This document shows, in pieces, positions 9,248 through 43,634 of a stretch of DNA of 64,000 nt (positions are counted from its first letter, which is position 1; every line of letters starts with the position of its first letter). The position numbers were made by a program, and so were the translations under genes. The notes beneath the pieces are model-generated. The model was not told the DNA's origin. It saw only the letters and a list, made by a program, of their open reading frames with translations, and ran no database searches. Where the stretch lies: the sequence record LR756501.1; one strand, given 5' to 3'.

Positions 9248-10654
9248 ATGGTTATAAATTTTGAAGAATATTCTCTAAATGAGAAGTTTGGATTCCCAGA
9301 TTCCCTTGAACCTGTTGTATCCGTCTTAACTGAATATATGATTGATAAAATGAATTGGTGGACGAATAGAAAAGGCGTGGCCAATTATACAGATAGTCAC
9401 CATTTCGATATGAGAGATTTTGATCCATCGATAATTTCAAATAAAGATTTTCCTCTCGCACACATAAATTTGAAATTCTCAATAGTTAAAGGGGGAGCAA
9501 CAAGAACAGGTATAGCAGGATTTGCTTATCCATTTAAACCCAAACGATATAATGATGTTGATTACGACTATTCAAGAATTTATAGAGGTAAAATAAATAT
9601 GTTCTTAGAGTTTAAGACACATATACTTGGCAAATCTATACAAATAGGTAAACTCAGAGAAGAAGCACATACAGTTATAAGACACGAATTACAACATATG
9701 TATGAGACTTATCAAAAACTTATACGTGGTGTAGATATGAATCAAGATTCAACTGTTACAAATTTTAATTGGGTTTTATTGTTTGATGTTTACGATCGTT
9801 ATAAAAAATGTATAACTTTTAGAAGATTTTTCTATCTATTTTATTCCATTTCACACGAAAAAGAATTCAACGCTTTTATGTCTGAGTTCACATCAGGTAA
9901 AGTGAAGACAATTGAGGAAATAACAGCAGGAAATAAGGCTATGGTTATTTTAAAATACGATAATTTTGATAAGTTATATGATGAAATATTAAAGGAATTT
10001 GAAAAATATTATCCAAATGTTGACGTAGAATCATTACCCAAATATATTATTGAAGAAACGACTAAAAGCATTAAGGATCTAAAAGTTGGAATTCCAAATT
10101 GGTTAAAAGAATACGACAAAGATTTTAAAGGATTCCTCTACCAAATGTGGAAAAGAATCCAACTGAAAAAAGAAAAATTCATCAAGAAGTCCAGTAAAAT
10201 ATTTAACTCAAGAAAATTATTAGAATTCTCTCAATTTGCTGAAAGAGACGCTCTTGATCCATACGGCGAAGAAGATTGGGAAGGCGATGAAATAAACGCT
10301 AGAAAACTAGATGAAGAAGATGAAAGAAGAAGAATAGAAGAGGAAGAAATCGAAAGAAGATTACACATGGTTAGAGCCTTTATACATCTAATAGATTGGA
10401 ACTTCGATAGAGAAAATCTAAGTAGGGTCATTATTAAAAATAATAAAATAATCACAAGGGTAGAAGGTAGAGGCGATTATAACGATACATTCAACTATAC
10501 TTATCTAGGTGATACCCTAGTAGTGAGAAAAACATGGGGACCAATGATGAAAGAAGGTCTTTGGATATTTCTTAATGGTATATATGAACCTGAATTCCCT
10601 ATGCAAGAGGCAAATTTATTATACCTTTTCTTTAGAAATAAATGGGAAAATTAA
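9248..10654 (+). CDS. Putative head-packaged protein with HExxH zinc-metallopeptidase motif and DPYGEEDW tag
   Basis: N-terminal MVINFEEYSLNE; IRHELQHMYE; LDPYGEEDW. Confidence 0.75.
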   Translation: MVINFEEYSLNEKFGFPDSLEPVVSVLTEYMIDKMNWWTNRKGVANYTDSHHFDMRDFDPSIISNKDFPLAHINLKFSIVKGGATRTGIAGFAYPFKPKRYNDVDYDYSRIYRGKINMFLEFKTHILGKSIQIGKLREEAHTVIRHELQHMYETYQKLIRGVDMNQDSTVTNFNWVLLFDVYDRYKKCITFRRFFYLFYSISHEKEFNAFMSEFTSGKVKTIEEITAGNKAMVILKYDNFDKLYDEILKEFEKYYPNVDVESLPKYIIEETTKSIKDLKVGIPNWLKEYDKDFKGFLYQMWKRIQLKKEKFIKKSSKIFNSRKLLEFSQFAERDALDPYGEEDWEGDEINARKLDEEDERRRIEEEEIERRLHMVRAFIHLIDWNFDRENLSRVIIKNNKIITRVEGRGDYNDTFNYTYLGDTLVVRKTWGPMMKEGLWIFLNGIYEPEFPMQEANLLYLFFRNKWEN

Positions 10655-11211
10655 CCCCTCTTATATTTTGATTTACCTACTGTATAATACTTCCTGTAAT
10701 TTTTAAACATTTCACCCTTTTGTTCAAAGAATATTTTAAACGCTCTTTTAGATAAATCAGCGTCGTCATTACGCATTATCTTAACTCTTAAAAATTGTTT
10801 AGTCTCGGGATCAAGATCAAATATAGTATTCAAATAATCTTCTTTATTGTAATAAACACCTATACCCTTTATTTTATATTTCAAAAACATTGGATTATCT
10901 ACTCTTCTTCTATGTGATTCCTTTGCCCTATCTGATACATTAGCAGAAGGAACTATAGGACCAAATTTAGCAATAGCCAAAGCATATAATAAATCCCCAT
11001 ATCCTGGTCCCCATATAGAACCTATACAATGAATTCCTCTGTCTTCCATTGTTGTAGTTTGGAAACCTTCATTTACAAACCCAACTATTTCATTGTCCTT
11101 AACAAGAAAAATGATTTTATAGCCGCTCTCATCACTATCGTCATAGAAGATTTCTACGTCGTTCATTTTGCCTATTTGAGCAACTTCAAATATTTTAAAT
11201 GTCTTTATCAT
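10651..11211 (-). CDS. Putative head-packaged protein, possible GNAT-like fold
   Basis: N-terminal MIKTFKIFE; GPGYGDLLY resembles the acetyl-CoA-binding GxGxG motif (weak). Confidence 0.55.
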   Translation of the reverse strand: MIKTFKIFEVAQIGKMNDVEIFYDDSDESGYKIIFLVKDNEIVGFVNEGFQTTTMEDRGIHCIGSIWGPGYGDLLYALAIAKFGPIVPSANVSDRAKESHRRRVDNPMFLKYKIKGIGVYYNKEDYLNTIFDLDPETKQFLRVKIMRNDDADLSKRAFKIFFEQKGEMFKNYRKYYTVGKSKYKRG

Positions 11212-11212
11212 A

Positions 11213-11908
11213 TTATTTCATTATATAAAATACTCCGTCCTTATCCTCATAACTTATCATCTTTTGATTATAAGTGACGTTTTCAAAATGTTTGGACAAT
11301 TCTCTCAAAAGATAATCCGGGTTATAACTATTACAATGTGCCTTACCTAATCTCATCTTAAACACTTTATCCTCACATCTCGTTGGTAAGATATTGAAAG
11401 CCATCCCTTTATTACATTTATTAAATGCCTTAATTAAAATGTTTATAATATCTTCTATTTCGAAGGAATATGTGAAAGTTCCACTAGCGATGAACCAGTC
11501 TGTTTTTTCTTTAACATCTTCTATTGTATTTATCGTGTAGAATTTTGGATTTAATTTAAAACCAAGTAAGTGTTTCATTCTTGTTCCAAATTGACCAATA
11601 GCGTCTCTTATGAAATTTCTATTTATATCAACACCAATATAGTTAACATTTAATCCAATATCTTTTGTGTAACTATATAAATCACCAAACCCACAACCGA
11701 AGTCTAAAATAGAATCGTTATTTTTAACTCCAATTTCTAAAAGATTTTTGAATCTGGTTTTTTGTTCGTTGGGCCCATGTTCCCAATAAACCTTATAAGC
11801 ATTGAACCCTTTGTCCAATTTTTTAGTGGATGTTTTATAACGCTTTCTTTGATTGTTATAAACATCTAAAGTGGCACTCTTATCAAATTCATATAGTTTA
11901 TTGAACAT
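11213..11908 (-). CDS. Class I SAM-dependent methyltransferase
   Basis: ILDFGCGFGDLY (motif I), YIGVDIN, DWFIASGTF. Confidence 0.85.
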   Translation of the reverse strand: MFNKLYEFDKSATLDVYNNQRKRYKTSTKKLDKGFNAYKVYWEHGPNEQKTRFKNLLEIGVKNNDSILDFGCGFGDLYSYTKDIGLNVNYIGVDINRNFIRDAIGQFGTRMKHLLGFKLNPKFYTINTIEDVKEKTDWFIASGTFTYSFEIEDIINILIKAFNKCNKGMAFNILPTRCEDKVFKMRLGKAHCNSYNPDYLLRELSKHFENVTYNQKMISYEDKDGVFYIMK

Positions 11909-11929
11909 AAAACTATATATTAAAATAAA

Positions 11930-13369: not shown

Positions 13370-14458
13370 ATGAAAAAATTTAGTCAATATATCAATGAAC
13401 AAAAATATAACGGTGAAGATAACAAGACATTTTTAATTACTAATGATTTGATTAAAAAATTAAGACTTCAATTTAGTAATGATAATTTATGTGTTGATAC
13501 TTTTCCAACGTGGTCACTTCTGCCTAACGGTTCAAAAAATATTGATATGGCTCTTTATATGTTATTCAATGATCTTTTCGAAGATAATACATGTACTTTT
13601 GACGCATATCTTTTAGATGAAGATTATAAATTAATAGAACATCAAACAATTGAAAGAGGGATAATTAGAGAAGCAAATTATATTCAAAGAGCTTTGTATT
13701 TAAGGAAAAATAAATGGGTTTATCGACAAGATTTGATTTTTAAAATAGTAGGTTCTAGATCGGAATATGTTGTTGATAGAAAAAAAGAGATTACAATTCA
13801 TGGAACAAAAAGGGTTGTATCTCTATTCGACCCTTATGGTGAAGAGGTTTGGGAAAGTTTAATTAATGAGAAACTTGGTGTATCTGATGTTGTTTATAGA
13901 ACAGCGGAAAAAATTTACGAACAAAGAAATTTAAAAAAGTGGGAAACAAAATTCAGTAGATCCAATTTAAAAGGTAAAATGACCCTTGATACTAAAGACT
14001 ACGAAGCACCTTTTAACGAAATGAATCTTGTTATACATTTTACCAATAACGAACGACCAAAGAATAGACACGGTGGTATGGATAGAATTGATCAAAACAC
14101 ATACGATATTTACATATATCACCATTGTAACAACGTATTTAGAACACTTGCTCACGAGTTAGATCACGTATATCAAGTTTATTTAAAGAAGGAAAGATAT
14201 AAAACTAATTTTGCTAAGCCTTCTGTATTAAGGAAATCTGAGCAGAGTCCAATTATGATGTCTGTTTACACTCAATTGAAACAAAGAGGCGTAAAGTCAA
14301 AAGAGGAGTTTATAGAGAAGTTAATGAAGTTACCAAAATATAAGAAGTACGTGGAAATACTTGATGATCCAAAAGAAAGTAATAAGAATAAGGCTGTAGC
14401 TGATAAAATGATAAAGAAGATGCATAAGTTGTACGCTGTATTCGCTGATGAAAAATAA
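13370..14458 (+). CDS. Putative head-packaged two-module protein; second module has an HExxH metallopeptidase motif
   Basis: MKKFSQYINE; FDPYGEEVWESLINE|KLG; TLAHELDHVYQ. Confidence 0.75.
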   Translation: MKKFSQYINEQKYNGEDNKTFLITNDLIKKLRLQFSNDNLCVDTFPTWSLLPNGSKNIDMALYMLFNDLFEDNTCTFDAYLLDEDYKLIEHQTIERGIIREANYIQRALYLRKNKWVYRQDLIFKIVGSRSEYVVDRKKEITIHGTKRVVSLFDPYGEEVWESLINEKLGVSDVVYRTAEKIYEQRNLKKWETKFSRSNLKGKMTLDTKDYEAPFNEMNLVIHFTNNERPKNRHGGMDRIDQNTYDIYIYHHCNNVFRTLAHELDHVYQVYLKKERYKTNFAKPSVLRKSEQSPIMMSVYTQLKQRGVKSKEEFIEKLMKLPKYKKYVEILDDPKESNKNKAVADKMIKKMHKLYAVFADEK

Positions 14459-14466: not shown

Positions 14467-15264
14467 ATGATGCTTAATTATATGCAATACATAAAAGAAA
14501 CAGAAGATACTTTATCTGGTACAACATCAGATATAAAGATCAAAGTAGAAGGTAAGAACTCTCTAGTTCAAACCCTTATAGATAATCTTTCTTTGGTTGT
14601 TAAGAAAAGAAAATTAAAGAGTGTTCGTATAAAAAGCATTAATGGTTATATCAATAGACAAACCTTTACACATCATGGTAATTTCTACGACACTTATTTA
14701 GAAGTAACTCTTACTAATAAAGACGTTATAGTTGGCGAGTACAAATCTTCTAGTAATAGTGTTCTTGTTAGAGTTAACGATGATATAGTTTACGATATGG
14801 ATAACAGAGCATTTGATAACGAAGTCTTAATTGATAAGATGGTAAATGAATATATTAAATATTTAAAAGAGAAGAGATTCACTATAAATGAAGCAGTTGA
14901 TGAAAAAGAAAATGGTGATAAGGTTTACGATTTTAATAGTATTATAGAACACGGTCACAGGATAGGTGCAAGTGAACAAACACTTAATGACGCTATAAGA
15001 AGAATGTTATTAAACAAAAACGTTACCTTCTGGTCACTTTTAGATGACGACCAAGTTGGATCTTTCGAAAAGACTTCTATCATTAAAGACGTATCTTACC
15101 AGTACGATATGATTCTCGTAACTACTAAGAATAACATGGAAGGATTTATTGATTTAAGTAAACCTGTTACGGTTCACCCTAGTTTTTTTAAAGAGGGGGA
15201 CGCTCTTAGAGGAAAGAAACCAGTAGAAAGAGTGAGATGGTATCATAAAGGAAAATTAAATTAA
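14467..15264 (+). CDS. Putative head-packaged protein ending in VRWYHKGKLN
   Basis: MMLNYMQYIKE; internal FTINE|A; C-terminal tag. Confidence 0.75.
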   Translation: MMLNYMQYIKETEDTLSGTTSDIKIKVEGKNSLVQTLIDNLSLVVKKRKLKSVRIKSINGYINRQTFTHHGNFYDTYLEVTLTNKDVIVGEYKSSSNSVLVRVNDDIVYDMDNRAFDNEVLIDKMVNEYIKYLKEKRFTINEAVDEKENGDKVYDFNSIIEHGHRIGASEQTLNDAIRRMLLNKNVTFWSLLDDDQVGSFEKTSIIKDVSYQYDMILVTTKNNMEGFIDLSKPVTVHPSFFKEGDALRGKKPVERVRWYHKGKLN

Positions 15265-16181: not shown

Positions 16182-16783
16182 TGGATCTAAATAAGCCAAA
16201 AGACGTATTAAAAGATTTACTTAGAGATACTGAGAACGATAAAATAAAATGGGACGTTTCCATTGAAGAACAGTTCATTAAGGCTACTCATTATATTGAC
16301 GTGACCAAAAATAAAAAGGTTACTTTTAAATTAGTATATTTCCTCAATCACCCAAAAGGTTCAAAATTAACTATCATCTACGATGTTAGAACAGACTTCT
16401 CAAAAAGATCTGCCACACTAATGGATTTAGGTGGTAAGAATAAAAAATCAGAAGTCAAAGATATATCTTATCTCCTTCATAAAATATTATTAAAAGAAGA
16501 AAGATATAAAGACGTTGAAATCTTCATTGAAGATAAATTCGATATTGGTGATAGAGTGGTTGTTACAAAGGTGCAAGAATTTAACGGTGACGAGCTAGGT
16601 CAAAAGGGAACAATCCTAGCAGAGTTATCAGGAAGAGATAAAGAAGTTCTTTTCTTAATCAAATTTGATAATAAGTTTAGTGATATTATGGTTGACGGGG
16701 AGTTTGCTTTAAACACAGGACAAACAAGAGATGGTAACGCTTGGTCGTTTAAACCTGAAAATATTAAAAGAATTAAGGATTAA
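16181..16783 (+). CDS. Hypothetical protein with C-terminal KOW/SH3-like module
   Basis: FDIGDRVVV...GQKGTI...FLIKFD pattern. Confidence 0.7.
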   Translation: MDLNKPKDVLKDLLRDTENDKIKWDVSIEEQFIKATHYIDVTKNKKVTFKLVYFLNHPKGSKLTIIYDVRTDFSKRSATLMDLGGKNKKSEVKDISYLLHKILLKEERYKDVEIFIEDKFDIGDRVVVTKVQEFNGDELGQKGTILAELSGRDKEVLFLIKFDNKFSDIMVDGEFALNTGQTRDGNAWSFKPENIKRIKD

Positions 16784-17604
16784 CTTATTCTAATAAAATC
16801 GTAATCTTTCACTTTATTAAAAGGAACTATAAATCTAGATCCAGCATTTGTAACAAAGGTGATTTTATTAAAGTTGTCCATATCTATATCAGTAACTTTA
16901 TAACTATTAGACCTAACTCCAATATCTGATCTAGGTGTATAAACTTGATCTAATCTAACGTCATTTGGATCAGAAGGGAAATCATCACCTATTCCAACAG
17001 GATCGTAGTCTTCAATGATATCGTCTTCTAAGGATTTAATCAATTTACCTTTTGAGTACCATTTAACCCCTTCTTTCACTGGTTCTTTAATTGACTTTAT
17101 TACATGTTCTAAAATTAAAAATACTCCTTCTTTACCATTTACTATGTCCACATTGCCTTCTTGGTACCTATGTTGACCTGTTTTAGCTCTATTTGGATTA
17201 CCTTTTACGTAATATCTAGCGTATAGATTACCAACTAGACCGTCTACAAATAAAGCAAAATAATTACTTTTATCTTCTATTAATTCATCGTCTTCTTCCT
17301 TCAATAACTCAATACCAAGTGGATCTTCGGCGTAAATTAATTCGTAACCAAAATCAAAATCACCAACTCTTTCTATCAACCAATCGTATAATTCTTTAAC
17401 CTTATTACGTTCGTCCCATATCTCTTCCCCGTAAGGATCTAAATCTTCGTGTCCTTCTCTCATCAAACAATATTGTTCGTAAGTGGCAATCTTTCTAGCT
17501 GATGGATCACTACCGCCTGCATCCTTATTAGTTTTGGCTTTACCTGATTTCTTCATCAGTTTCTTAAACTGTTTAACGGTGGATTTTCTTGGTAACCCTG
17601 GCAT
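16780..17604 (-). CDS. Modular protein carrying both DPYGEEIW and VKWYSKGKL tags
   Basis: ORF track; both motifs seen in translation. Confidence 0.75.
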   Translation of the reverse strand: MPGLPRKSTVKQFKKLMKKSGKAKTNKDAGGSDPSARKIATYEQYCLMREGHEDLDPYGEEIWDERNKVKELYDWLIERVGDFDFGYELIYAEDPLGIELLKEEDDELIEDKSNYFALFVDGLVGNLYARYYVKGNPNRAKTGQHRYQEGNVDIVNGKEGVFLILEHVIKSIKEPVKEGVKWYSKGKLIKSLEDDIIEDYDPVGIGDDFPSDPNDVRLDQVYTPRSDIGVRSNSYKVTDIDMDNFNKITFVTNAGSRFIVPFNKVKDYDFIRIS

Positions 17605-18674
17605 TAGAAATCATTAATTTTTGGACGTTGACCAGTACCACTTAAAGATTCCCATTCTTTTAAATAACCAGCCAATCCTATATTTCTATAAAACATTATA
17701 ACGTCTCTTCTTTCAACGTGATAATATTTAACAAGGATAAGATTTAATTGATCTATTTTAGCCAGAAATTCATTGAACTCAACGTCTTTATCTACTGATG
17801 TTTTAGCTTGTAAACTATCTACTATTCCAACTAAACTCCTAAGAGAAGTATCTTTTATAAATGAACTCCAACTTTTATATTTATTGAGATAACTATCAAC
17901 TATGTTAAGATTCTCCTTAGTTTCAGGTGGAACGTCGTCTACTTCTCTTTTAGGATTTACTTTTTTAACAGATGGTTTAGGCGGTCTTGTTAGATCGTAA
18001 TTTATTCTACGATGTCCTTCTTCACCAGCATAAAATTCAGTTTTAACTGATTCTGGAGCTAGTTTAAACCAACCTTTAGGTCTATCTAATTTGTTTTGTT
18101 TACCTATTAACATCATAAGTTTCCAACAGTTATCATAGGTGTTATCGTACTTCTTTTGAAAGATAACGTCACTATAAATAAGTTTCATTATATCTGCTGA
18201 ATCCTCTGGTTTCTGTAATATTAAAGATTGTTTGATAACTTCTTCTGAGAAGGATAAATCTTTCATACCAGCTTTATAAGCGTCATCAAGTCTTTTCTTT
18301 TCTTCGTTAACAAAAAGTTGTCTTTTATGTTTGGTTAAATTTGGTTTAAGATAGTGAAGATTATTACGCATCTCTTTTGTGCCTTTAATGTCTCTAACTC
18401 CTAACCAACGAGTATCTTCTTTTTTAAAAAATGTTCTGGCTTTTTGATCTCCTCTTTTCCATCTTTTCATAAAATCATCTAAGAATTTATCTAAAAAGGA
18501 TGGGCTAATAGTAATTTTAAAATCACTCATGAGGACGTTGGACATTTCTTCAACGTCTATGGTTTCTTTGGGTTCGAGCGAAACTATGACGTCGTGCATT
18601 GCGTCTCTTAATTTTCTACTGGAAATCATAGCCATGTCCTCGTTTAAAAAGTCGTTGTAATTTAATTCTAGCAT
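17604..18674 (-). CDS. Putative head-packaged protein
   Basis: MLELNYNDFLNE; late-type motif at 18721-18733. Confidence 0.7.
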   Translation of the reverse strand: MLELNYNDFLNEDMAMISSRKLRDAMHDVIVSLEPKETIDVEEMSNVLMSDFKITISPSFLDKFLDDFMKRWKRGDQKARTFFKKEDTRWLGVRDIKGTKEMRNNLHYLKPNLTKHKRQLFVNEEKKRLDDAYKAGMKDLSFSEEVIKQSLILQKPEDSADIMKLIYSDVIFQKKYDNTYDNCWKLMMLIGKQNKLDRPKGWFKLAPESVKTEFYAGEEGHRRINYDLTRPPKPSVKKVNPKREVDDVPPETKENLNIVDSYLNKYKSWSSFIKDTSLRSLVGIVDSLQAKTSVDKDVEFNEFLAKIDQLNLILVKYYHVERRDVIMFYRNIGLAGYLKEWESLSGTGQRPKINDF

Positions 18675-19066: not shown

Positions 19067-19312
19067 TTAACTTATATAGTCACCAGGACCACTTTGACGA
19101 TCAAAATCACTACTAAAAGATTGGTCTTTTAATATTTTATTCTTATATTCAAGAAAAGCCTTTTGTATTACTCTAACTGACTCTTCCACGTCGCAAGGCT
19201 TTTTCAAATCCACTTTCATCAGAAGATTTACTATTCTTGTAGCGTAAACAAACTCCTCTGGGAGATTCATCTCTTTTGCTGTTGGTTTATTTTCGTCTAA
19301 TATTTCTTTCAT
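19067..19312 (-). CDS. Hypothetical protein
   Basis: ORF track; ATGA overlap. Confidence 0.65.
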   Translation of the reverse strand: MKEILDENKPTAKEMNLPEEFVYATRIVNLLMKVDLKKPCDVEESVRVIQKAFLEYKNKILKDQSFSSDFDRQSGPGDYIS

Positions 19313-19536
19313 AACATTTCATCTATTAATCTTGATCTCATCCAATTTTTTAATTCATCTTCTTTGAAATAAACCAAGAAAGTTCCATCGTTCATTTTAT
19401 GTCCGTCAAGATTATACTTTTCATTTTCTTCTTGGGTTACAAATGTAACAATTTCTTTGGTATCTTCGTCCATACGACTATACCACGCATTTGCGCCAAT
19501 CACCCAACCTTTTTTAGTAATTTTATCAAGACTCAT
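19309..19536 (-). CDS. Small protein with C-terminal RSRLIDEML tail
   Basis: Shared C-terminal motif. Confidence 0.7.
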   Translation of the reverse strand: MSLDKITKKGWVIGANAWYSRMDEDTKEIVTFVTQEENEKYNLDGHKMNDGTFLVYFKEDELKNWMRSRLIDEML

Positions 19537-19732
19537 GTTTATTAGTCATTTCATCTATTAAATTTGTTCTAACTAAATTCTTCATTTCGTTCTTCATTAA
19601 AACAGCCTTTTCGTACATATCATTAATTTTATCTGAATCCATAAACTTTCGGGTTCTATCAAAAGAATTTAATAATTTATCTATACATTCTTTCTCAAAT
19701 GCCACTTGTTCAAATAAATCTTTATCCATCAC
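19526..19732 (-). CDS. Small protein with C-terminal RTNLIDEM tail
   Basis: Shared C-terminal motif. Confidence 0.7.
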   Translation of the reverse strand: MMDKDLFEQVAFEKECIDKLLNSFDRTRKFMDSDKINDMYEKAVLMKNEMKNLVRTNLIDEMTNKHES

Positions 19733-20007
19733 TTATTAGTCATTTCATCTATTAATTTCGTTCTTCTGAAATTTTGATATTCTTCTGTATCATGTCTCCT
19801 ACCTTCAACGTAAAACTGGTGACCTATTCCGTCAAAAAATTCTATAGCTGGTCCGTCTTCTCTATGTAGTTTATTGTTAAGTTTATATTCAAATCTATCT
19901 CCGAATCTGATCTTTTGAGGTTCGTTACATTTAAGCCAACTTAGTACACCAACCTCTTCTGTGTAAAATTCTATATCTAGTTTTGCGTCTTTAGTTTTTA
20001 TGGGCAT
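19729..20007 (-). CDS. Small protein with LHREDGPA motif and RTKLIDEM tail
   Basis: LHREDGPAIEF is a common phage repeat unit; shared C-terminal motif. Confidence 0.75.
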   Translation of the reverse strand: MPIKTKDAKLDIEFYTEEVGVLSWLKCNEPQKIRFGDRFEYKLNNKLHREDGPAIEFFDGIGHQFYVEGRRHDTEEYQNFRRTKLIDEMTNK

Positions 20008-20261
20008 AATTCATCTATTAGTTTTGTTCTGTGATAATTCTTAAACTCTTCTAATGAGAGAAAGAGATCGAAGATTTTACCTTCCCATTCACATTTATCA
20101 CAAATATAGTTTCTGTCTTTCATATCGGCCATGAAGTCATCTATTTCACCAGTATTATTACCACATTGGGGACAGTGTAGAGTAGATGGCCAACCACTTC
20201 TACCAACCCAACCATATGAGTTAGGAACAACTCTAGTTACATATCCATTTTCGTTGTACAT
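19998..20261 (-). CDS. Zinc-ribbon protein with RTKLIDEL tail
   Basis: CPQC...CDKC; shared C-terminal motif. Confidence 0.75.
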   Translation of the reverse strand: MYNENGYVTRVVPNSYGWVGRSGWPSTLHCPQCGNNTGEIDDFMADMKDRNYICDKCEWEGKIFDLFLSLEEFKNYHRTKLIDELCP

Positions 20262-20476
20262 TAAATAGTCTTGACTATATTGATTATTGTTCCAAGGAAA
20301 TCTTTAATCCAGTTACCAATGAGGGAACCGCTCCAAAGTGGGAAAAACAAAATTACAATAATTAAAATGAAAAGCAAAAACTTTTTTATATTTTTTCTAT
20401 TATTGTGCCAAAACAAGATGAGATTAAATGGTCTCTTAGCTGGATCTTTTATTTTTCTACCATCGTGAATATTCAT
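20261..20476 (-). CDS. Small membrane protein
   Basis: FLLFILIIVILFFPLW hydrophobic helix. Confidence 0.65.
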   Translation of the reverse strand: MNIHDGRKIKDPAKRPFNLILFWHNNRKNIKKFLLFILIIVILFFPLWSGSLIGNWIKDFLGTIINIVKTI

Positions 20477-20502
20477 AAGATTCTGGTTTTATTGATTATA
20501 TA

Positions 20503-21000
20503 TTAAAAGACGAAATAAGTTTTCAAAATATCACCTAAACATTTTCTATTAATCACTTGGCACATTGTGAATATACATTTCTTACCGTTAAGTTCTATAA
20601 CAGAACCACTAAATAAACCTCTGAGCTTCTTACCTTTTATAGACTTAAATGGTATCGTAACATTTTTAAATAAAACACCTTCTTTTATAACACCATACAT
20701 TTTATTTTTAACCTCTTTATCTATTATACCGTGATTGAGATCAGAAGTATCGTGACCAATTACCTGATATTTATTATCCAATTCTATTATTTTAACAAAA
20801 GCTTCGTTAACGTCTAATATAACATTAGTATTAGCGTCAGCTATAGCCATAGGACAAGGATTAAGATCAAAGATTTTAAAGAATTTTTCCTCCACTATTC
20901 GTAGTTCTTCAGTAGTACATTTTAGTTCTCTTTCTACGTAATCTTGTTCAATAACAATACCAGACGTATTAGGCTCTTCACAATGATGAATTAATTTCAT
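20503..21000 (-). CDS. Stand-alone PAS-domain protein
   Basis: IFDLNPCPMAIAD....ILDVNEAF.......QVIG is a classic PAS N-terminal signature. Confidence 0.75.
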   Translation of the reverse strand: MKLIHHCEEPNTSGIVIEQDYVERELKCTTEELRIVEEKFFKIFDLNPCPMAIADANTNVILDVNEAFVKIIELDNKYQVIGHDTSDLNHGIIDKEVKNKMYGVIKEGVLFKNVTIPFKSIKGKKLRGLFSGSVIELNGKKCIFTMCQVINRKCLGDILKTYFVF

Positions 21001-21062
21001 TATTAAGCGGTTTTTTACTCGTGTATATATTTAAAATCAAAAATGGAAATCGTCAAATTTTT

Positions 21063-21278
21063 TTACAATCCTCTTTCTATGAGATGTTCCCGTATAGATT
21101 GAAATTTACCGTCTTTATCTAGTTCTACTATATCCCACACTTCTTTTGGATCTACTTTTGTAATTGATTTGGATTTAAAATCTATAACTAAGTACCAAGA
21201 ATTTCCATTAGATACGATGGTATCAAGTATTCTACAATACGTTCTTCCGTCTTTTAATAAGACAATTTTATTTTTCAT
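21063..21278 (-). CDS. Hypothetical protein
   Basis: ORF track. Confidence 0.65.
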   Translation of the reverse strand: MKNKIVLLKDGRTYCRILDTIVSNGNSWYLVIDFKSKSITKVDPKEVWDIVELDKDGKFQSIREHLIERGL

Positions 21279-21281
21279 ATT

Positions 21282-21872
21282 TTAAATTATTTTATATCTA
21301 CTACTCATTAACATCTTTGGTGTAAATTCCTCCATCGCTAGCAATGAAATAGACTTAACAAGTATATCGATATATATCGTGTTTTTAGTTTCAAGTTGTC
21401 GATTTATATCAGTTACTAAAGCGTCAACTAATTTATTCTCCATCTTTTGAACAATATCCATACCTGTAGCAGCCCTTATATCTTGCTTATCTTCGTGAGA
21501 CATAGTTATACCATATTCCTTCTGCTCAAGTTTAGGCATTATTTCAAAAGTCTTACCACTCAAATTAAGCTTAGATAATATCTTCATACTCATAGGTAAA
21601 AGATTTTGTCCTATATCCCTGGTTGGTGGATCAGCGTTCGGAAACCATCCTCCCATACCTCTACCATGTGAATCATAATCATAACTTTCTATTTGATGAT
21701 ACTCAGCGTAAACACACATAAATTGTCTAACTTCGGGATCTATGACCTTCAACGCGTCCAAAATTGGAGTCCATTTTCTTAAAGCTTTCTCACTATCTAT
21801 CTTGTAGTTTTTGCCTTTTATTTCATATTCTTTTTCCATGTTACTCTTCCTTATTTTTTTCAGCGTACTCAT
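21282..21872 (-). CDS. Truncated/internally deleted paralog of a gp23-type major capsid protein (likely start at ATG 21839)
   Basis: QDIRAATGMDIVQKMENKLVDALVTDINRQL resembles T4 gp23 QDLRAVHGMDADAELSGILATEIMLEINREV (recalled sequence). N-terminal KWTPIL..YAEYH..GQNLLP resembles capsid-protein N-termini. Confidence 0.6.
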   Translation of the reverse strand: MSTLKKIRKSNMEKEYEIKGKNYKIDSEKALRKWTPILDALKVIDPEVRQFMCVYAEYHQIESYDYDSHGRGMGGWFPNADPPTRDIGQNLLPMSMKILSKLNLSGKTFEIMPKLEQKEYGITMSHEDKQDIRAATGMDIVQKMENKLVDALVTDINRQLETKNTIYIDILVKSISLLAMEEFTPKMLMSSRYKII

Positions 21873-22098
21873 TTATCCACTTTTGACGCTCAATTTTTTC
21901 AAGTCTTTCCATCTCATCGTAATCTGGTAAAATACCTGTACTATAAGATTCTAGACACTCAAGACAACCAGCCCCGTGCAATTCCTTCTGATTCTTTAGT
22001 TTTGGATCACTATTACTTACATGTATCCATTTACCACATCTAGCCCTACTAATAGAACTGTGGTAAAACAACTTATCTTTGTTTATTATAAAATTCAT
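21841..22098 (-). CDS. Hypothetical Cys-containing protein
   Basis: ORF track; RCG...CLEC. Confidence 0.65.
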   Translation of the reverse strand: MNFIINKDKLFYHSSISRARCGKWIHVSNSDPKLKNQKELHGAGCLECLESYSTGILPDYDEMERLEKIERQKWINEYAEKNKEE

Positions 22099-22142
22099 AA
22101 TCTTTTTTATTTGTATATATTATATAAATATTGTCATTTTTA

Positions 22143-22469
22143 TCATTTCTGACAATTAAGCATTTTATCCATTAGAACCATTCTTCTAAAATTTTTGAAT
22201 TCGTCTTCTGTAAAGTTTACGGCCACTGGAAAATCTATTTCTTCTTTGTTTCTAATTGATTTGGCTAGTTCCAATGAGAATTCGTCTATATCTTCTTTTT
22301 TGCCTAGTTCTTCTATTTCTTTCATGTCGAGATATAGTTTATATTCTTCTGGAAGCCAACCCATCCATTTAGTATAATCGTAGTCGAATAATCTTCCTTC
22401 TATAAAACCTCCCCAAGAGCTTTTGGGGCATCTATGTTTAGTTTTAAATTTTAGTTTTCTTCTTCCCAT
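22143..22469 (-). CDS. Small protein with RRMVLMDKML tail
   Basis: Variant of the shared C-terminal motif. Confidence 0.65.
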   Translation of the reverse strand: MGRRKLKFKTKHRCPKSSWGGFIEGRLFDYDYTKWMGWLPEEYKLYLDMKEIEELGKKEDIDEFSLELAKSIRNKEEIDFPVAVNFTEDEFKNFRRMVLMDKMLNCQK

Positions 22470-22686
22470 ATAGTACGTCGTCGATTAATTTATTTCTCTT
22501 GATATTAATTCTCTCACATAAAATGTCTGCAACAAAAGAATTTGTATCTTCGTCAAAGATGCCTTTATGAAATATTAATTCAACCCCAGCCATTCCAAAA
22601 TTTGAACCACTACCAATAGATCTTGCACCATCAGATACTTCAATTACTAATTCTTCGCCTTTGTATATTGTTTCTATTCTTTGCAC
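22444..22686 (-). CDS. Small protein with KRNKLIDDVL tail
   Basis: Variant of the shared C-terminal motif. Confidence 0.65.
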   Translation of the reverse strand: MQRIETIYKGEELVIEVSDGARSIGSGSNFGMAGVELIFHKGIFDEDTNSFVADILCERINIKRNKLIDDVLYGKKKTKI

Positions 22687-32533: not shown

Positions 32534-33535
32534 TTAGTATAAATTTCCGTTTACAACTTCTACTCTAAATCCTCTCTCCTGTAGCTCTATGTGTAATTCT
32601 TCTATATCAAGATCTCCGTGATAAAGTAAATCACCTTCAGCGGGCTCTTCAAATCCCATTCTTTGTAACTCAGGATATTGATTTAAAATATGTTCGTCAT
32701 ACATTTCACCACTATCAAGGAAAACACCAGCCCCTATCTTAGCGTCCTCTGGTACAGTTCCTAATCTTAAAATAAAATCTTCTTTTGGTAACGCAATTGA
32801 TTGAGGTACAACGTTCTTAGGGTTACATGAAAGTTTACCACCGTCATCAAATCTAATTGATATTTTACCGTCTTCTTTTTCTTCTACAAATTTAGCACTT
32901 TTATTGTTGTGTTCGGATTTAGCGTTTTTATAAACAACTTTATCGCCTTTTTTGAAATTTGATTTTGCTGGGGCTTTACCACCGTAGAATGTATCTGGTA
33001 CATCAAATGTGCCTGGTCCCCATTCTGCTCTACCTAATCTTTCCTCGGGAATCTCTTGATATCCTTCAGGAACTTTCTTCTTTGGTTTTGGTTTAGGTGT
33101 ACCAGCGGCGTAAACATTTTTAGCGTTGGCTGCTAATTTTTTCTTATCGTCAAAGACTATTCTATATTTACCGTCATCTTCTCTTATACCAACAAAAACA
33201 CCTGTTTTACCATCGTGCTCTGATCCTTCTTTATAATAAACAATTCTATCACCTGCTGTTGGTACATCACCATCGTTATCATTTACAGGTTTAGCTGGTT
33301 CAACTTCTTTATCAACATGAACATTTAACATCTTATTCAGATAATCTAAATCATCGTCGTCTTGATGAACAGGACTATTACCTGGTTTATTATCAGGATC
33401 GCCACCTTTACTAAGTTTATCTAGGAGAACTTTTTCATCTGGTGTTAAATTTTCCAAACCTTTATCAAGGAGTTCGTCAATTTTAGCTTGATCTTCAACC
33501 CCTTCATTGATGAATTGTTTATATCTTTTTACCAT
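32534..33535 (-). CDS. Putative head-packaged protein with two KOW/SH3-like repeats
   Basis: MVKRYKQFINE; GDRIVY..GSEHDGKTG..IVFDD and GDKVVY..KSEHNNKSA..IRFDD. Confidence 0.75.
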   Translation of the reverse strand: MVKRYKQFINEGVEDQAKIDELLDKGLENLTPDEKVLLDKLSKGGDPDNKPGNSPVHQDDDDLDYLNKMLNVHVDKEVEPAKPVNDNDGDVPTAGDRIVYYKEGSEHDGKTGVFVGIREDDGKYRIVFDDKKKLAANAKNVYAAGTPKPKPKKKVPEGYQEIPEERLGRAEWGPGTFDVPDTFYGGKAPAKSNFKKGDKVVYKNAKSEHNNKSAKFVEEKEDGKISIRFDDGGKLSCNPKNVVPQSIALPKEDFILRLGTVPEDAKIGAGVFLDSGEMYDEHILNQYPELQRMGFEEPAEGDLLYHGDLDIEELHIELQERGFRVEVVNGNLY

Positions 33536-35030: not shown

Positions 35031-36497
35031 ATGTTGAAAAACTATTGGACATATATTAAAGAATCAGCAGATGGTTTAACAAAATTAATAATTTGTATTC
35101 ACAATATAGAAGACTATAACGTTATAGCTGAATTTTTGGATTTTGAAGGGTTCAAATGGGGCAACGAAAGAGTAATCACATTAAATAGAGATTATAATTG
35201 TTTTAAAAATGAATCTCCAGATTTTTGTTTCATTTTACACGAACCAGGGGCTTTGGGATACGGTAGAAAACACGGTTTAATGGGCCCAGGTTGTGATTAT
35301 AACAGTTACAGTTTTATGGAAGGAGTAGATTTCATTGATGAATATATTAATGATAACAAAAAACCAGCAAGAGTAAGATGGTATAAAAAAGGTAAACTAA
35401 ATGAGTCTAAAGAAGATATTGGTAGGAAAGTTAAAATGAGAGATGATTCTCGTTATTACGACGAAGCTTACGGTAAGTCTGGGGATGGTTACGGTGTAAT
35501 TTACGAATGGACTCCTTGTCCAGATTACGCTAATATGGAAAATTACCATTCGTACTCAATAGAATGGAGTAACGGTGTTAAAGACGGTTATCAAAAAATA
35601 GATTTTGATTTTATAGAAGATTTAGAACCAGAACAACCAGTAAAAGTAAGATGGTACAAAAAGGGGAAATTGGTGAATGAAAAAGATAGTTGGGAAGAAG
35701 AAGAGGTCGGTCGCACTTTAGTTGGAAAAAGAGTAAGAATTAGAAAAGATTCGCAATTTTACAATCAAGCTTTTAGAGAAGGGAACGGTAAAAAAGGAAT
35801 AGGAACAGGTATAATCACACATTACGTATATAGTGACGATTACCCTTTTAGTATTAAATGGGACGAAAGTGGAATATCGTTTGGTTATCAAAAAAGAGAT
35901 TTTGATATTATAGAAGACACAGATGAACCAGTTAGAGTAAGATGGTACAAAAAAGGTAAATTAAATGAATCTAAAGAGTATATTGGAAAAAGAGTGAAGA
36001 TGAGAGAAGATTCAGCGTATATTAATCAGGCCTACGGTTATCATAACGAAGATAACGGTGAAGGTATAATAACTGATTACATTAGCGAAGAAGAAAGAGT
36101 AGCAGGCGGACTCCCATATAGAATTACTTGGGATAATAAACACAGCAATTCTTACAATAGAAGAGATTTTGATTTTTTAGACGATTTAAAACCAGGAAAG
36201 ATTAGATGGTATAAAAAGGGTAAATTGTTAAATGAAGGTAAGAAATATATGTACGGTGATATTTGCACTCTTATTGGCACTGATGAAGATGTTAAAATTC
36301 TAGCATTTAAAGATTTTATACATGTAACAGAATATCAAATTGAATATCAAAATGGTAACATAAAATGGGTGCCAGAAGCGTGGTTACAATTTAAAGGGAA
36401 AACTATATCCAAACCAAAACCAGTAGATCGAATAAGATGGTACTCGAATGGTAAGTTAAGAAATGAAAATAAAAAATTTATATATAACAAAAAATAA
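35031..36497 (+). CDS. Five-module polyprotein with [VI]RWYxxGKL(x)NE linkers; modules 2-4 are paralogous SH3-like domains
   Basis: MLKNYWTYIKE; five linker copies; repeated G[RK][KR]V[KR][MI]R.DS.[YF]...A...G.G.I...Y.I.W...DFD. Confidence 0.85.
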   Translation: MLKNYWTYIKESADGLTKLIICIHNIEDYNVIAEFLDFEGFKWGNERVITLNRDYNCFKNESPDFCFILHEPGALGYGRKHGLMGPGCDYNSYSFMEGVDFIDEYINDNKKPARVRWYKKGKLNESKEDIGRKVKMRDDSRYYDEAYGKSGDGYGVIYEWTPCPDYANMENYHSYSIEWSNGVKDGYQKIDFDFIEDLEPEQPVKVRWYKKGKLVNEKDSWEEEEVGRTLVGKRVRIRKDSQFYNQAFREGNGKKGIGTGIITHYVYSDDYPFSIKWDESGISFGYQKRDFDIIEDTDEPVRVRWYKKGKLNESKEYIGKRVKMREDSAYINQAYGYHNEDNGEGIITDYISEEERVAGGLPYRITWDNKHSNSYNRRDFDFLDDLKPGKIRWYKKGKLLNEGKKYMYGDICTLIGTDEDVKILAFKDFIHVTEYQIEYQNGNIKWVPEAWLQFKGKTISKPKPVDRIRWYSNGKLRNENKKFIYNKK

Positions 36498-40524: not shown

Positions 40525-40585
40525 TTCCGTATTGTATTTTTTACCTATATATAAATTTTTTATATTGCTATTTGTAATCAGTTGA

Positions 40586-41452
40586 TTATGAATCCATTGG
40601 TAAAGAAATACTTTCTTTTTTATGAATCCATGATAATCTATTTTGTGTAATATTTTCTCCAAATATTTCGTTCACAGCTTTTTGAACGTCGTAAGAGTTA
40701 TAATAGTCGTGACCAGCGATTGTTCCGCCTATTTTCACTTTTGGGTACCATTCTGTTATATCTTTTTTAGCTATTTCGTAACTATGATCAGCGTCAATGA
40801 AAACAAAATCTAAGGACAGATCTTCGTAATATTTTGGAGCTATATAAGAACATTCTACTATTGGGTTTATGTATTCTTTTAACGGTGATATGTTTTTTAA
40901 AAAATTATCGTATAAATTATTATTTTTTAAATATTCTTCGTGATATATTTCACCTGAACCTTGCCAAGTATCTACACAATCAAATTTTATTTTCTTACCT
41001 GAATTTTTTATCTCGGTTGCCATAAATGAACCAGAACGTCCTAACCAAGAGCCTATCTCCACAAAATGATCACCGTCTTTCCCGTCTTGAACAGCCTTTT
41101 TATAAACACTTTGAAAGTCAAACCAACCGTCTATTTTATTATAAATATGATTACCGTATAATTTATCTATTTTTATATCAAATAGAAATGAGGAACCGTC
41201 GTAGAAATTTAAAGTTAAATCGTCATTATCATTAGAATACGCGTCTGGTTTTACCCAATGATTTGTACCTGGATAAGAAAAATTATCAGTAAGTGAGTAA
41301 CAAACATTACCATTTAAAACAAAATCTATTTTTAGTATTTTATTTAAATGTTCACTGCCACCAGCGTCATTCAAATTAACTGAACTAATAATAATTTTAT
41401 TTGGGTCATTTTCTATTCTAACATAGAAATCATTTTCAGTTGGATTTTTCAT
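40586..41452 (-). CDS. Class I SAM methyltransferase (Methyltransf_24-like) with N-terminal extension
   Basis: [11 protein letters not shown]; [10 protein letters not shown]; GGTIAGHDY. Confidence 0.88.
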
Positions 41453-42492
41453 CTTTTAAAAAATTTTTGCCATATATTTTTTTCACCATATTTATCTAAA
41501 TCACTTTCCATCATTAATTTAACCAAATCTTTAAATTTAGTTTTAGCTTCCCAACCAAGAATTTCTTTCGCCTTTGTTGGATCACCAAGTAAAAGATCAA
41601 CCTCTGCTGGTCTGAAATATTTTGGATCCACTTGTATTACAATAGTGTTATTTGTATTTCTATCTACTCCTATTTCATTTACACCTTCACCACGCCATAA
41701 TATATCAATATTAACATATTTACAAGCCTCTTCTACAAATTCTTTATTTGAATGTGCTTCACCTGTGGCTAAAACGAAATCATCTGGTTTATCTTGCTGT
41801 AACATAAGATACATACCATATACAAAATCTTTCGCGTAACCCCAATCCCTTTTGGCGTTTAAATTACCTAAATGTATTGGTGTTTTCGTTTTTGTCCAAT
41901 TAACTAAACCTTTTGTAATTTTTCTCGTTACAAAAGTTTCTCCTCTACGTTCACCTTCGTGATTGAACAATATACCGTTAGAAATGAATAAGTTATAAGC
42001 GTCTCTGTAATTTTTACAAATCCAGTAAGCGTAAAGTTTAGCTACACCGTAAGGTGATCTTGGGTGAAATGGCGTAGTTTCTTTTTGTGGTACTTCTTGT
42101 ACTTTACCAAACAATTCTGATGTAGATGCTTGGTAAATTTTTGTATGTGGTGAGTAACGTCTAACTGTTTCTAGGATTCTAAGTACCCCTAAAGCGTCTA
42201 CTTGTCCTGTATATTCAGGGAGTTCAAAAGAAACTGCAACGTGGGATTGGGCTGCTAGGTTATATAGTTCATCAGGTTTAATATCTTGTATAACGTGCTC
42301 TATTGATAGAGTATCTGTAACGTCACCGTAATGAAGTTTTAGTTGTGGATAAATATGATCAATTCTACCTGTATTAAAGGAGCTAGATCTTCTAATTATA
42401 CCGTGTACTTCGTAACCTTTTTCTAAAAGAAGCTCAGCTAAATGGCTTCCGTCCTGTCCCGTGATCCCTGTGATCAGTGCTTTTTTACTCAT
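41449..42492 (-). CDS. gmd: GDP-mannose 4,6-dehydratase
   Basis: [66 protein letters not shown]. Confidence 0.98.
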
Positions 42493-42516
42493 TTCATAGG
42501 CTATTATTTTTTAAGG
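42493..42516 (-). repeat. 24-bp leader element, copy 2
   Basis: Identical to 27073-27096; abuts the gmd start codon. Confidence 0.9.
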
Positions 42517-42573
42517 CGTTATGATATTTATAGATAAAAAATCTAAAAGTTTATTTTAATATATACAGTTACT

Positions 42574-42885
42574 ATGATAAAGAGTTTTAAATTATTTGAA
42601 TCTGAAATAAATGAAATAGATCCTTATGGTGAAGAAAATTGGGAAGGGATAGAAGAATTAACACCAGATACCCCTATAAATATTGGTGATACTATTTATT
42701 GGAGTGATGGAATTGAATTATGCACAATAACAAGAATTGAAAAAGATGACGAAGACGATTGGATATGGGGGATTACATCACCAGAATCGATTCAAAAAGG
42801 TTTTGTAAAAGAAACAGGAAATAAAGAACTACCATACGGAAGAAGGAATTTAACTCATAGTAAATTAAAAATAAAACACGTGTAG
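42574..42885 (+). CDS. Putative head-packaged small protein with DPYGEENW tag
   Basis: MIKSFKLFESEINEIDPYGEENWE; KOW/SH3-like remainder (IGDTIYW). Confidence 0.75.
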   Translation: MIKSFKLFESEINEIDPYGEENWEGIEELTPDTPINIGDTIYWSDGIELCTITRIEKDDEDDWIWGITSPESIQKGFVKETGNKELPYGRRNLTHSKLKIKHV

Positions 42886-43634
42886 TGATAAAGAGTTTTA
42901 AATTATTTGAAGAACTAAAAAGAAAAGTACCAGCAGACTTCTCAGTTGATTTCACACCCGAAACAGAAGACTTTGCTAAGTTTGAAAGTGATTTTCTATT
43001 AAAAGACGATTTTGTTATAGATAAAAACGTTGCTGTATGTAAAGAAAAACTTTGTTCTTTTGAAATTAAAAAAATCAATGAAGACGATTTAATTATATAT
43101 GAATTAACTATTAAAGATAAAGACGGCGTCGTAAAAAACGAGAAGAAATTTAGAGCACATCAATATATTCCAAAAGAAAGAATCAACTTATTAGATACTA
43201 TACTCAATGTGTGTGCTTTTATAAAAGATAAAGTAACAAGAGAAATTCATGCTGACGTTGATCCTTACGGGGAAGAAGTATGGGACGGTCCAGAAGAAAT
43301 TAAGAAACCAGAAAGAGATCCAATAGAAGCAGCCTACGGTGAAGAAGACTGGGACCCTGATAATGTTGACGTTGGAGTAAGAGCAAGAATGGCGAATCGT
43401 CATATACCACCAGCAGATATATTGGCTATATTACAAAGAGACCAACAACGCAGAGATAGAGAATTTGAAAGGGGCAGAGAAGCTAATATTGAAAGGCACG
43501 CAGCTGATATGCGTAGGCGAGCAGAAGAACAAAGAGCCGCGGCTGATGCAGCACCTAAAAAGAAAGGTTTTTATAAAACAATTGGAGATTTCCTTAAAAA
43601 ATCGGGACCTCCATCGATGCACCGTAGAGGATAA
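42885..43634 (+). CDS. Putative head-packaged protein with two DPYGEE-type tags (GTG start)
   Basis: MIKSFKLFE, with the same 5' DNA as 42574; VDPYGEEVWD and AYGEEDWD. Confidence 0.75.
   Translation: MIKSFKLFEELKRKVPADFSVDFTPETEDFAKFESDFLLKDDFVIDKNVAVCKEKLCSFEIKKINEDDLIIYELTIKDKDGVVKNEKKFRAHQYIPKERINLLDTILNVCAFIKDKVTREIHADVDPYGEEVWDGPEEIKKPERDPIEAAYGEEDWDPDNVDVGVRARMANRHIPPADILAILQRDQQRRDREFERGREANIERHAADMRRRAEEQRAAADAAPKKKGFYKTIGDFLKKSGPPSMHRRG

Follow-up and report, generated by a model that had tools for sequence, protein, structure and literature searches.

The 64,000-nucleotide stretch of sequence record LR756501.1 analysed in this study, referred to as the window in the following, encodes a short acidic-aromatic peptide, DPYGEExW, at nine places in six open reading frames (ORFs); seven of these copies are strict and two are variants, and all are present as the original prediction had described them. 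The same peptide recurs throughout the phage genome from which the window derives: about 104 copies are found in 87 of roughly 1033 genes (8%), where 0.00013 would be expected from the composition of the proteome. It is held by selection at the level of the protein and not of the DNA, occurs on otherwise unrelated proteins, and is predicted to lie outside their folded domains. We refer to this peptide as the tag and to the proteins that bear it as carriers. Our best explanation, which we put forward tentatively, is that DPYGEExW may be a docking label, recognized by one shared receptor while particles are assembled or loaded with cargo.

The window is part of a 735,411-bp record of an uncultured phage, deposited without annotation, in which window coordinates are converted to record coordinates by adding 255,060; a 7.8-kb stretch of it is 100% identical both to LR756501.1 and to LR756503.1. 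The 735-kb genome was described as a member of the 'Mahaphage' clade with Bacteroidetes as the predicted host (Al-Shayeb et al., 2020; PMC7162821). With 735 kb, LR756501 is the largest published phage genome.

Selection acts on the peptide

Within the window, the degenerate DNA pattern for DPYGEExW has seven matches, as against none in each of 100 shuffles of the window; the expectation for the proteome was calculated from amino-acid composition. A six-frame scan of the genome returned 104 matches, 103 of DPYGEExW and one of DPYCEExW, and a single DPYAEExW exists in addition to these. DPYGE and PYGEE are the most widespread pentapeptides of the proteome (91 proteins, followed by a collagen repeat in 13), and perfect copies are ten times commoner than variants with one substitution. 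When 59 pairs of homologues with at most 92% identity are compared, the seven fixed residues are conserved in 86–97% of cases, the x position in 51% and the flanks in about 45%. The carrier genes are spread over the whole genome and yet clustered, with 26 adjacent pairs where 7.2 would be expected.

At the DNA level, several codons are used at every degenerate position of the motif, and their frequencies resemble those of the same dipeptide contexts elsewhere: TAC before Gly accounts for 74% in the motif versus 69% outside it, CCT before Tyr for 66% versus 54%, and GGT before Glu for 65% versus 64%. This reflects a codon-pair bias of the entire genome, in which Tyr is encoded by TAT in 64% of cases overall but by TAC in 69% before Gly, and Pro by CCA in 56% overall but by CCT in 54% before Tyr. 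With a codon-pair context bias of this kind, any peptide that recurs may look conserved at the nucleotide level. Likewise, the GGG codon for Gly, which had been singled out as uncommon, is not remarkable, with a share of 13% in the motif compared to 9% for any Gly before Glu in the genome.

The 25-nt identity between positions 27834-27858 and 43254-43278, from which a recombination joint had been proposed, is exact but ordinary: one base more fails on both sides, and because it stops dead at both ends, we regard it as the product of a fixed peptide and codon bias. Across 101 copies, the longest exact identity between any two is 31 nt and never includes the flanks, while about 50 of the 5050 pairs share at least 24 nt. 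Gene conversion or a recombination joint at the DNA level therefore finds no support, since codon choice follows the codon-pair context and identity is confined to the motif. Nor does the motif look like a DNA repeat in its placement, given that all 104 of the 104 matches are in frame in ORFs of at least 55 codons (other frames and non-coding DNA were not scanned separately). As synonymous codons vary with the genomic context and conservation is found at the amino-acid level, it is the peptide that is under selection.

Placement and predicted structure

The original prediction placed the tag at module boundaries, which covers only a fraction of its occurrences, as it is found genome-wide and mostly in terminal positions. 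The largest class, of 43 copies, is internal, 41 copies stand at the extreme C-terminus and 20 are located 6–25 residues past the initial Met, behind a start such as MIKKFKIFE. In 28 of the C-terminal copies, exactly two residues, mostly D, E or N, separate the Trp from the stop codon. The identical three position classes are seen in 331 unique copies pooled from this genome and its relatives in IMG/VR (among the matches listed), and the same set, with the same scope, yields the extended consensus [KR]-[IV]-[FYI]-[ST]-[ED]-[LIV]-DPYGEE-x-W-[ED]-[ED]. The original prediction also noted that [ILF]-N-E often follows within about 10 residues. This holds for 4 of 8 copies in the window, whereas genome-wide it applies to 8 of the 60 copies that have downstream sequence; compared to a background of 2.4% (p ~1e-4), it is an enriched feature of a minority.

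Position 4 of the tag is predominantly G, followed at a distance by N, D and then S, A and C (229, 24, 11, 5, ...). Because these residues favour a left-handed turn, the motif probably takes a defined shape when bound. Judging from the residue pattern, we would expect a D-P-Y-G turn and possibly a small hairpin that pairs the aromatic residue at -4 with the Trp, at least in the bound state. While Gly occupies position 4 in 103 of 105 copies of the 735-kb genome, all four copies seen in a relative (L156, an ENA contig syntenic with window positions ~13000-35000) have another residue there (N, N, D and A). We considered a lineage-wide switch or co-evolution at this position and rejected it, as other contigs mix G and N copies; we read the variation as tolerance for turn-forming residues.

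AlphaFold2 models place the tag outside folded domains in both contexts tested. In the 478-aa protein of the window, the modules at residues 5–118 and 142–205 are predicted with confidence, and all three tags fall into segments with a pLDDT below 50. In a leucine-rich repeat (LRR) protein from a relative, the solenoid reaches a pLDDT of 94–99, compared to 36–59 for the 29 N-terminal residues that comprise the start motif and the tag. Taken over both contexts, tags are modelled at 36–59 beside domains at 70–99, in agreement with the earlier claim that the motif stands at module boundaries and not within folds. As is characteristic of short linear motifs, which have fewer than about 12 residues, it is thus found in disordered or exposed sequence, on unrelated carriers, and conserved above its flanks.

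Carriers and module exchange

The carriers share no common body, and their median length is about 150 aa. Once the motif is masked, 73 of the 87 lack a BLASTP paralogue in the genome, which bears out the description as a short linear motif borne by proteins that are otherwise unrelated. One recognizable carrier is a CCA-adding enzyme (phrog_2244, 4e-57), which stands behind N-terminal SH3-like modules and four tags; others are a tRNA-methyltransferase-like protein, a GNAT, HExxH proteins and zinc-ribbon-like proteins. Scans against PHROGs and NCBIfam gave no family for the six carriers of the window; in 20 larger carriers they recovered only the CCA-adding enzyme, the tRNA-methyltransferase-like protein and the GNAT, and in ten further mid-size carriers nothing more than two marginal hits (E ~0.003), both in families without assigned function.

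In several proteins, the tag separates modules that have been rearranged. The 478-aa protein contains a module A (residues 1–118) and a module B (residues 139–206), an SH3-like/KOW barrel with Z-scores of 8–9. Module A comes first in this protein and in its 85%-identical orthologue, but second, third or fourth in five other homologues, in which the neighbouring modules vary. It is always bracketed within a few residues by DPY.EE.W or by [VI][RK]WY.KGKL, and a module often retains its own Met within the fusion (e.g. W-E-D-T-N-E-M-R-R-G-K-F). Since module A changes its place and is always bracketed by these motifs, the comparison of domain order that had been suggested as a check shows exchange exactly at the motif and confirms it as a module boundary. 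The SH3-like modules were also considered as the receptor of the tag and rejected because of their divergence, which is too great for reading a strict 8-mer; when an iterated hidden Markov model search was started from one module, it found no other copy.

The second of the bracketing motifs, [VI][RK]WY.KGKL, is basic, usually followed by x-(N)-E, and present in 19 copies in 13 proteins genome-wide. It resembles DPYGEExW in its role at module boundaries and is opposite in charge; five copies occur in a single protein of the window. The 478-aa protein (at 28554-28592) and its homologues P0002-P0007 end in KGKL-x-(N)ES-MITSFHAFRNL, a tail that looks like the start motif of a next module behind the junction, ended early by a stop codon.

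A different type of carrier is found in six IMG/VR loci (L022, L028, L053, L100, L105 and L134), which encode tandem arrays of LRR proteins with 22-residue repeats. These have 4–13 repeat-motif matches each, with repeat numbers that differ between neighbouring copies, and each bears the start motif and DPYGEExW as a disordered N-terminal extension.

Circumstantial links to virion assembly

With T4 proteins as a guide, we located a T4-type head module at record positions 71,969-78,166, and its assignments were confirmed by PHROGs. It encodes a portal, a head maturation protease and a major capsid protein (MCP), while the tail sheath is encoded elsewhere. The protease retains the residues that align with His85 and Ser140 of T4 gp21, which we take, from structural work on T4, to be the catalytic pair. 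Fused to it is a scaffold-like region in which a 14-residue unit of the type I-K-Y-x-E-Y-I-A-E is repeated 12 times in tandem; these repeats resemble the T4 capsid targeting sequence (CTS), MKTYQEFIAE (PMC8442874).

Forty-one small proteins of the genome each match a part of some protein that is at least twice as large; we call them fragments. Fourteen derive from portal, protease/scaffold, MCP or sheath, and 7 of these 14 are tagged, as opposed to 1 of the other 27 (Fisher p = 0.001) and to all other genes (p = 5e-5). The seven tagged fragments comprise a protease domain in which His is replaced by Tyr and Ser by Arg, with the tag where the active protease has its scaffold region; a protein of scaffold repeats and tag; two pieces of the MCP; a piece of the portal in which the tag interrupts a loop; and N- and C-terminal pieces of the sheath. 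Judged by its substitutions, the tagged protease domain is predicted to be catalytically dead. Because the fragments are diverged ORFs that are kept in relatives, we regard them as functional genes and not as debris; they could regulate assembly, serve as adaptors or decoys, or be weapons against related phages.

A further link is provided by the start M-x-K-x-[FY]-x-x-[FY]-x-(N)-E, which is found on about 12% of the proteins (127 of 1033), for example as MIKSFKLFE, MKKFSQYINE or ...FINEA. It is 4–10-fold enriched at N-termini genome-wide, and [ILFVMY]NE is 4–5-fold enriched at residues 5–14. Tagged proteins have this CTS-like start more often than others, with an odds ratio of 11 (p = 8e-15), or of 3.8 (p = 1e-5) when the N-terminal class is left aside. 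By its resemblance to the T4 CTS and to the 12 IKYxEYIAE repeats of the protease-scaffold protein, the start may combine prohead targeting with a protease site. The φ-N-E (φ, hydrophobic) after some copies of the tag is the same element as that of the start motif. Furthermore, a φ-N-E about 44 residues into the MCP would lie at the place expected of a T4-type maturation cut, and a small MCP-derived protein appears to begin just before the point homologous to that site. Of the earlier interpretation, a link with head and virion assembly has circumstantial support in the tagged mini-paralogues, the dead protease and the CTS-like starts.

Distribution among phages and cells

A scan of IMG/VR returned at least 120 stretches with at least 261 copies, on contigs of low GC content (22–33%) and up to 243 kb in length. 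As half of this genome's proteins have homologues there (among the matches listed), we assign these stretches to relatives of the phage. A profile search of 1.84 billion protein representatives yielded 398 proteins at E<=0.001, a threshold that single-copy carriers cannot reach; nearly all are multi-copy, with up to 12 copies each. A tblastn search of 50,697 deposited phage records with a 33-aa tag-bearing peptide matched only this genome, and the cultivated 'megaphage' G is unrelated and does not have the motif. In 185,579 cellular genomes, a stricter pattern gave five stretches, four of them on short low-GC contigs in bins of metagenome-assembled genomes, including three Bacteroidetes bins; the fifth is without the Trp and has a stop codon at the x position. 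Since it is essentially absent from cellular genomes, we consider the tag to be a device that is specific to this phage lineage rather than a signal taken over from a host.

Full-text literature searches for DPYGEE and its variants gave only unrelated eukaryotic papers, and reviews and papers on huge phages are silent on the motif. As a short targeting or docking peptide, DPYGEExW has relatives among known systems, and the motif itself may have been described elsewhere. As far as we can tell, its scale (8% of the genes), its free placement (N-terminus, C-terminus, linker and loop), its strictness over seven residues and its presence on fragments of structural proteins are new.

A proposed docking label and its alternatives

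A docking label is the simplest account of a motif that is strictly conserved, exposed, independent of position and borne by unrelated proteins, and the particle is suggested as the destination by the statistics on fragments, by the dead protease and by the CTS-like starts. In the mechanism that we propose, the tag would be a portable exposed peptide, an address label outside any fold, that is read by one common putative receptor acting in trans. This receptor would belong to the prohead or virion, and the tag would bring in varied accessory proteins, which would join the particle under assembly either as cargo or as minor components; LRR proteins, enzymes, inactive portions of structural proteins and small membrane proteins would all be among them. 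It would act beside the T4-like N-terminal motif for capsid targeting and protease cleavage. A precedent is found in the internal proteins of T-even phages, whose only common feature, for all their diversity, is a capsid-targeting tag (PMC3012670).

Several points weigh against this reading and are the reason why we hold it only tentatively. The receptor and its binding to the tag are both putative. Ordinary-looking cytoplasmic enzymes (the CCA-adding enzyme, the tRNA-methyltransferase-like protein and the GNAT) are among the carriers, and 10 of the 87 have predicted transmembrane segments; enzymes of tRNA metabolism and membrane proteins would make odd cargo, although there are other phages that package enzymes. 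Their presence weakens a pure 'virion cargo' view, for which the original prediction had named occurrence mainly in non-virion proteins as a ground for refutation. The sheath fragments do not fit a destination in the head interior, and the full-length portal, MCP, protease-scaffold and sheath are all untagged. Moreover, the statistics on fragments are based on low counts (7 of 14), the gene set consists of our own crude calls (1033 genes, 95% coding), and the phage is uncultured.

The main rival to particle docking, which we consider somewhat unlikely, retains the docking and changes the destination: the tag would bring its carriers to a hub such as a replication or translation factory, a condensate, a chaperone, a degradation adaptor or protease (for which it would be a degron) or a host protein. 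Such a hub would suit the tRNA-related enzymes, the GNAT, the small membrane-anchored proteins and the LRR arrays, as well as the use of N-terminal, C-terminal and linker positions, which is shared by degrons, PIP-boxes and the Rubisco-binding motif of the pyrenoid. Likewise, the alternation of SH3-like modules with up to 12 tags per protein is reminiscent of multivalent scaffold and client architectures, and the near-invariance of the motif over divergent contigs (GC 22–33%) would agree with a slowly evolving host target. A hub of this kind leaves unexplained, however, why half of the head and tail mini-paralogues are tagged and why tagged proteins share a T4-CTS-like N-terminus; in addition, host-type genomes do not use the motif, and the SH3-like modules are too divergent to be the receptor of a strict 8-mer.

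A recognition or cleavage site for a phage protease, at which multi-module polyproteins would be cut and terminal copies trimmed as pro-peptides, appears improbable. A strict motif of 7 out of 8 residues is typical of viral polyprotein sites, the tag lies at module junctions, a retropepsin-like gene adjoins the gene of the 478-aa protein in a synteny that is kept in a relative, and φ-N-E, which is similar to the T4-type site (L/I)-x-E, is enriched just past the motif; but cutting the 41 copies that stand two residues from a stop would achieve almost nothing, the retropepsin adjacency belongs to a long syntenic block and is not specific, and the likely sites of the prohead protease are φ-x-E motifs and not DPYGEExW. 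Co-folding of the retropepsin-like protein (2 copies) with a 39-residue junction peptide gave a score of 0.02, which weighs neither way. We are equally sceptical of a self-contained structural element, such as a hairpin, a turn cap or a solubilizing acidic bristle, that would insulate modules and have no binding partner. Its position between small domains and the features compatible with a small hairpin (the D-P-Y-G turn, G, N or D at position 4 and an aromatic residue at -4 opposite the Trp) speak for it; against this, AlphaFold2 confidence is low in two contexts, and a mere spacer would neither hold seven residues fixed across more than 300 copies nor be expected two residues from the stop of single-domain proteins. 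Least probable is a stretch conserved mainly as a DNA recombination joint (microhomology), with the peptide as incidental. It would account for the exchange of modules exactly at the motif, for its presence in unrelated proteins and for the identical stretches of 24–31 nt between many copies. Yet synonymous positions vary with the codon-pair usage of the genome, identity is confined to the motif, all 104 matches are in frame, and conservation between homologues follows the amino acids and skips the x position, so that a joint as primary function is largely refuted, even though modules are clearly swapped there.

Docking to the particle may also be part of a wider scheme, which we find unlikely: a proteome-wide code of address labels, in which DPYGEExW, the CTS-like start with its protease site and [VI]RWY.KGKL would together load some ninety proteins into the particle for co-injection. 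Its cargo would consist of enzymes, LRR binders, membrane proteins and crippled fragments of portal, protease, capsid and sheath, and the beads-on-a-string build would let large cargo thread through the tail. If this were true, no bacterial virus would be known to have a larger or more modular cargo-sorting code.

If a single peptide does address 8% of the proteome in the largest known phages, it would give access to several hundred 'hypothetical' proteins in one step and show which proteins act together and how very large phages organize their extra gene content. It would also offer a small tag, usable in any position, with which foreign proteins could be brought into large capsids or to the hub that it binds. 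A second puzzle, which has now become testable, is posed by the structural proteins that exist as tagged copies, either dead or truncated.

Comparison with known systems

The closest parallel is the CTS of the T4 internal proteins IPI–III, which, like DPYGEExW, is a short terminal peptide and the sole feature common to diverse phage proteins (PMC3012670, PMC8442874). This phage likewise has genes for a T4-type portal, a gp21-like protease and a gp23-like MCP, and many of its proteins, tagged ones included, begin with the CTS-like pattern M-x-K-x-[FY]-x-x-[FY]-x-(N)-E. The tag itself, however, differs from the CTS in its acidic-aromatic sequence, while the CTS-like pattern forms a separate start motif (MKTFEQFNE, MIKKFKIFE, ...FINEA). 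Moreover, the T4 CTS comprises about 10 residues at the extreme N-terminus of a handful of proteins, ends in a (L/I)-x-E protease site, directs its proteins into the prohead and is removed by the gp21-type protease, whereas DPYGEExW is found on about 87 proteins, and no more than 20 of its 104 copies are located at most 25 residues from the Met. For the tag, packaging and cleavage are putative, with indirect support from the tagged paralogues of head proteins.

In encapsulins and at the C-terminal end of the HK97 protease, short disordered peptides, mostly at the C-terminus, dock cargo inside a shell of the HK97 fold. Similarly, a protease-fold paralogue of this phage has the tag at its C-terminus. 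By contrast, the consensus is different, the tag also occurs in internal and N-terminal positions, the carriers are scattered over 735 kb and not encoded in a dedicated shell–cargo operon, and the shell is the T4-type MCP of a tailed phage. Many proteins are targeted to one known hub by the Rubisco-binding motif of the pyrenoid, the encapsulation peptides of bacterial microcompartments and PIP-boxes. Like the tag, these motifs are located at extreme termini, repeated in linker proteins and present on membrane proteins; they belong to other organisms and have other sequences, and their hub is known where that of the tag is putative.

Partial resemblances exist to two further systems. W-acidic motifs (x-W-[DE] in an acidic context) are eukaryotic peptides bound by the TPR grooves of kinesin light chain; the E-E-x-W-[ED]-[ED] half of the tag is such a W-acidic peptide, whereas the D-P-Y-G half is without counterpart. 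In polymorphic toxins (VENN in CdiA, PxxxxDPxGL in Rhs), a short conserved motif marks the point of module exchange, as it does here. There, the motif ends a large conserved delivery domain and precedes a toxin and its immunity gene, while in this phage there is neither a constant domain nor an immunity partner and the motif usually ends the protein (41 copies are the last before the stop).

Features of the window and head-module genes

The positions of all features are collected in Table 1. The window contains one gap of 21 N (26463-26483), a multiple of three, within the ORF of an Mre11/Rad50-like fusion (23465-27073(-)) and outside all ORFs with the motif. Because the reading frame is open through it and a 64%-identical orthologue on the contig of the L156 relative aligns over it with zero indels, we regard both sides of the gap as continuous and in frame.

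Table 1. Copies of the tag and associated features (window positions, unless marked as record positions)
Feature	Position	Strand	Remarks
DPYGEEDW, internal	10256-10279	+	ORF 9248-10654, 468 aa, with HELQH (HExxH)
DPYGEEVW followed by ESLINE, internal	13829-13852	+	ORF 13370-14458, 362 aa, with HELDH (HExxH)
DPYGEEIW	17416-17439	-	ORF 16780-17604(-), 274 aa
VKWYSKGKL, second junction motif	17041-17061	-	same protein as the DPYGEEIW copy, ORF 16780-17604(-)
478-aa beads-on-a-string protein	27159-28595	+	three copies of the tag and one VRWYKKGKL junction (28527-28547)
DPYGEEEW, copy 1 of the 478-aa protein	27528-27551	+	linker with pLDDT<50 between two confident modules
DPYGEEDW, copy 2 of the 478-aa protein	27840-27863	+	linker with pLDDT<50
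DPYCEEDW variant, copy 3 of the 478-aa protein	28257-28280	+	DPYGEEDW in the 85%-identical orthologue P0002
DPYGEENW, N-terminal class (MIKSFKLFESEINEI-DPYGEENW)	42619-42642	+	ORF 42574-42885, 103 aa
DPYGEEVW	43260-43283	+	ORF 42885-43634, 249 aa
AAYGEEDW, degenerate	43329-43352	+	15 residues past the DPYGEEVW copy at 43260-43283
WYHKGKL junction motif, C-terminal	15238-15258	+	ORF 14467-15264
488-aa protein	35031-36497	+	five [VI]RWY.KGKL between SH3-like modules; same module grammar, zero DPYGEExW
ORFs with CTS-like start	13370-14458, 14467-15264, 17604-18674(-), 32534-33535(-), 42574-42885, 42885-43634		
ORFs with third terminal tag	19309-19536, 19729-20007, 19998-20261, 22674-22937, 22924-23124, 23118-23468	-	six ORFs in the array 19309-23468(-)
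MCP mini-paralogue, 196 aa	21282-21872	-	untagged; N-arm, one helix, C-terminal strand
Further mini-paralogue sites	record 11314, 48028, 145891, 552409, 553796, 554941, 619760 and others		
Portal	head module		phrog_213, 2e-66
Head maturation protease	record 73913-76336		phrog_207, 5e-27; fused to scaffold-like repeat region
Major capsid protein	head module		phrog_138, 9e-23
Tail sheath	elsewhere in the genome		phrog_34521, 3e-75

A retropepsin-like aspartic protease, which is unusual in a phage, is encoded at 28558-28977(-), convergent with the gene of the 478-aa protein. It has 139 aa and a DTGS motif and matches TIGR02281 with 3e-10, below the curated cut-off. A third terminal tag is found genome-wide on 12 small proteins (66–116 aa), which end in [FY]KN.KR[TS][KE]LID[KE].L followed by 2–7 residues.

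Two small tagged ORFs lie within a cluster for sugar nucleotides and glycans (40586-59071), between the genes of a GDP-mannose 4,6-dehydratase (3e-156) and a dTDP-4-amino-4,6-dideoxyglucose formyltransferase (7e-79). The cluster also encodes a DegT-type aminotransferase, glycosyltransferases and methyltransferases, among them one multidomain protein of 1755 aa. Finally, a protein with collagen-like G-x-y repeats is encoded at 7805-9058(-), which has weak matches to tail-fibre PHROGs and a zinc-ribbon-like CxxC pair at its C-terminus.

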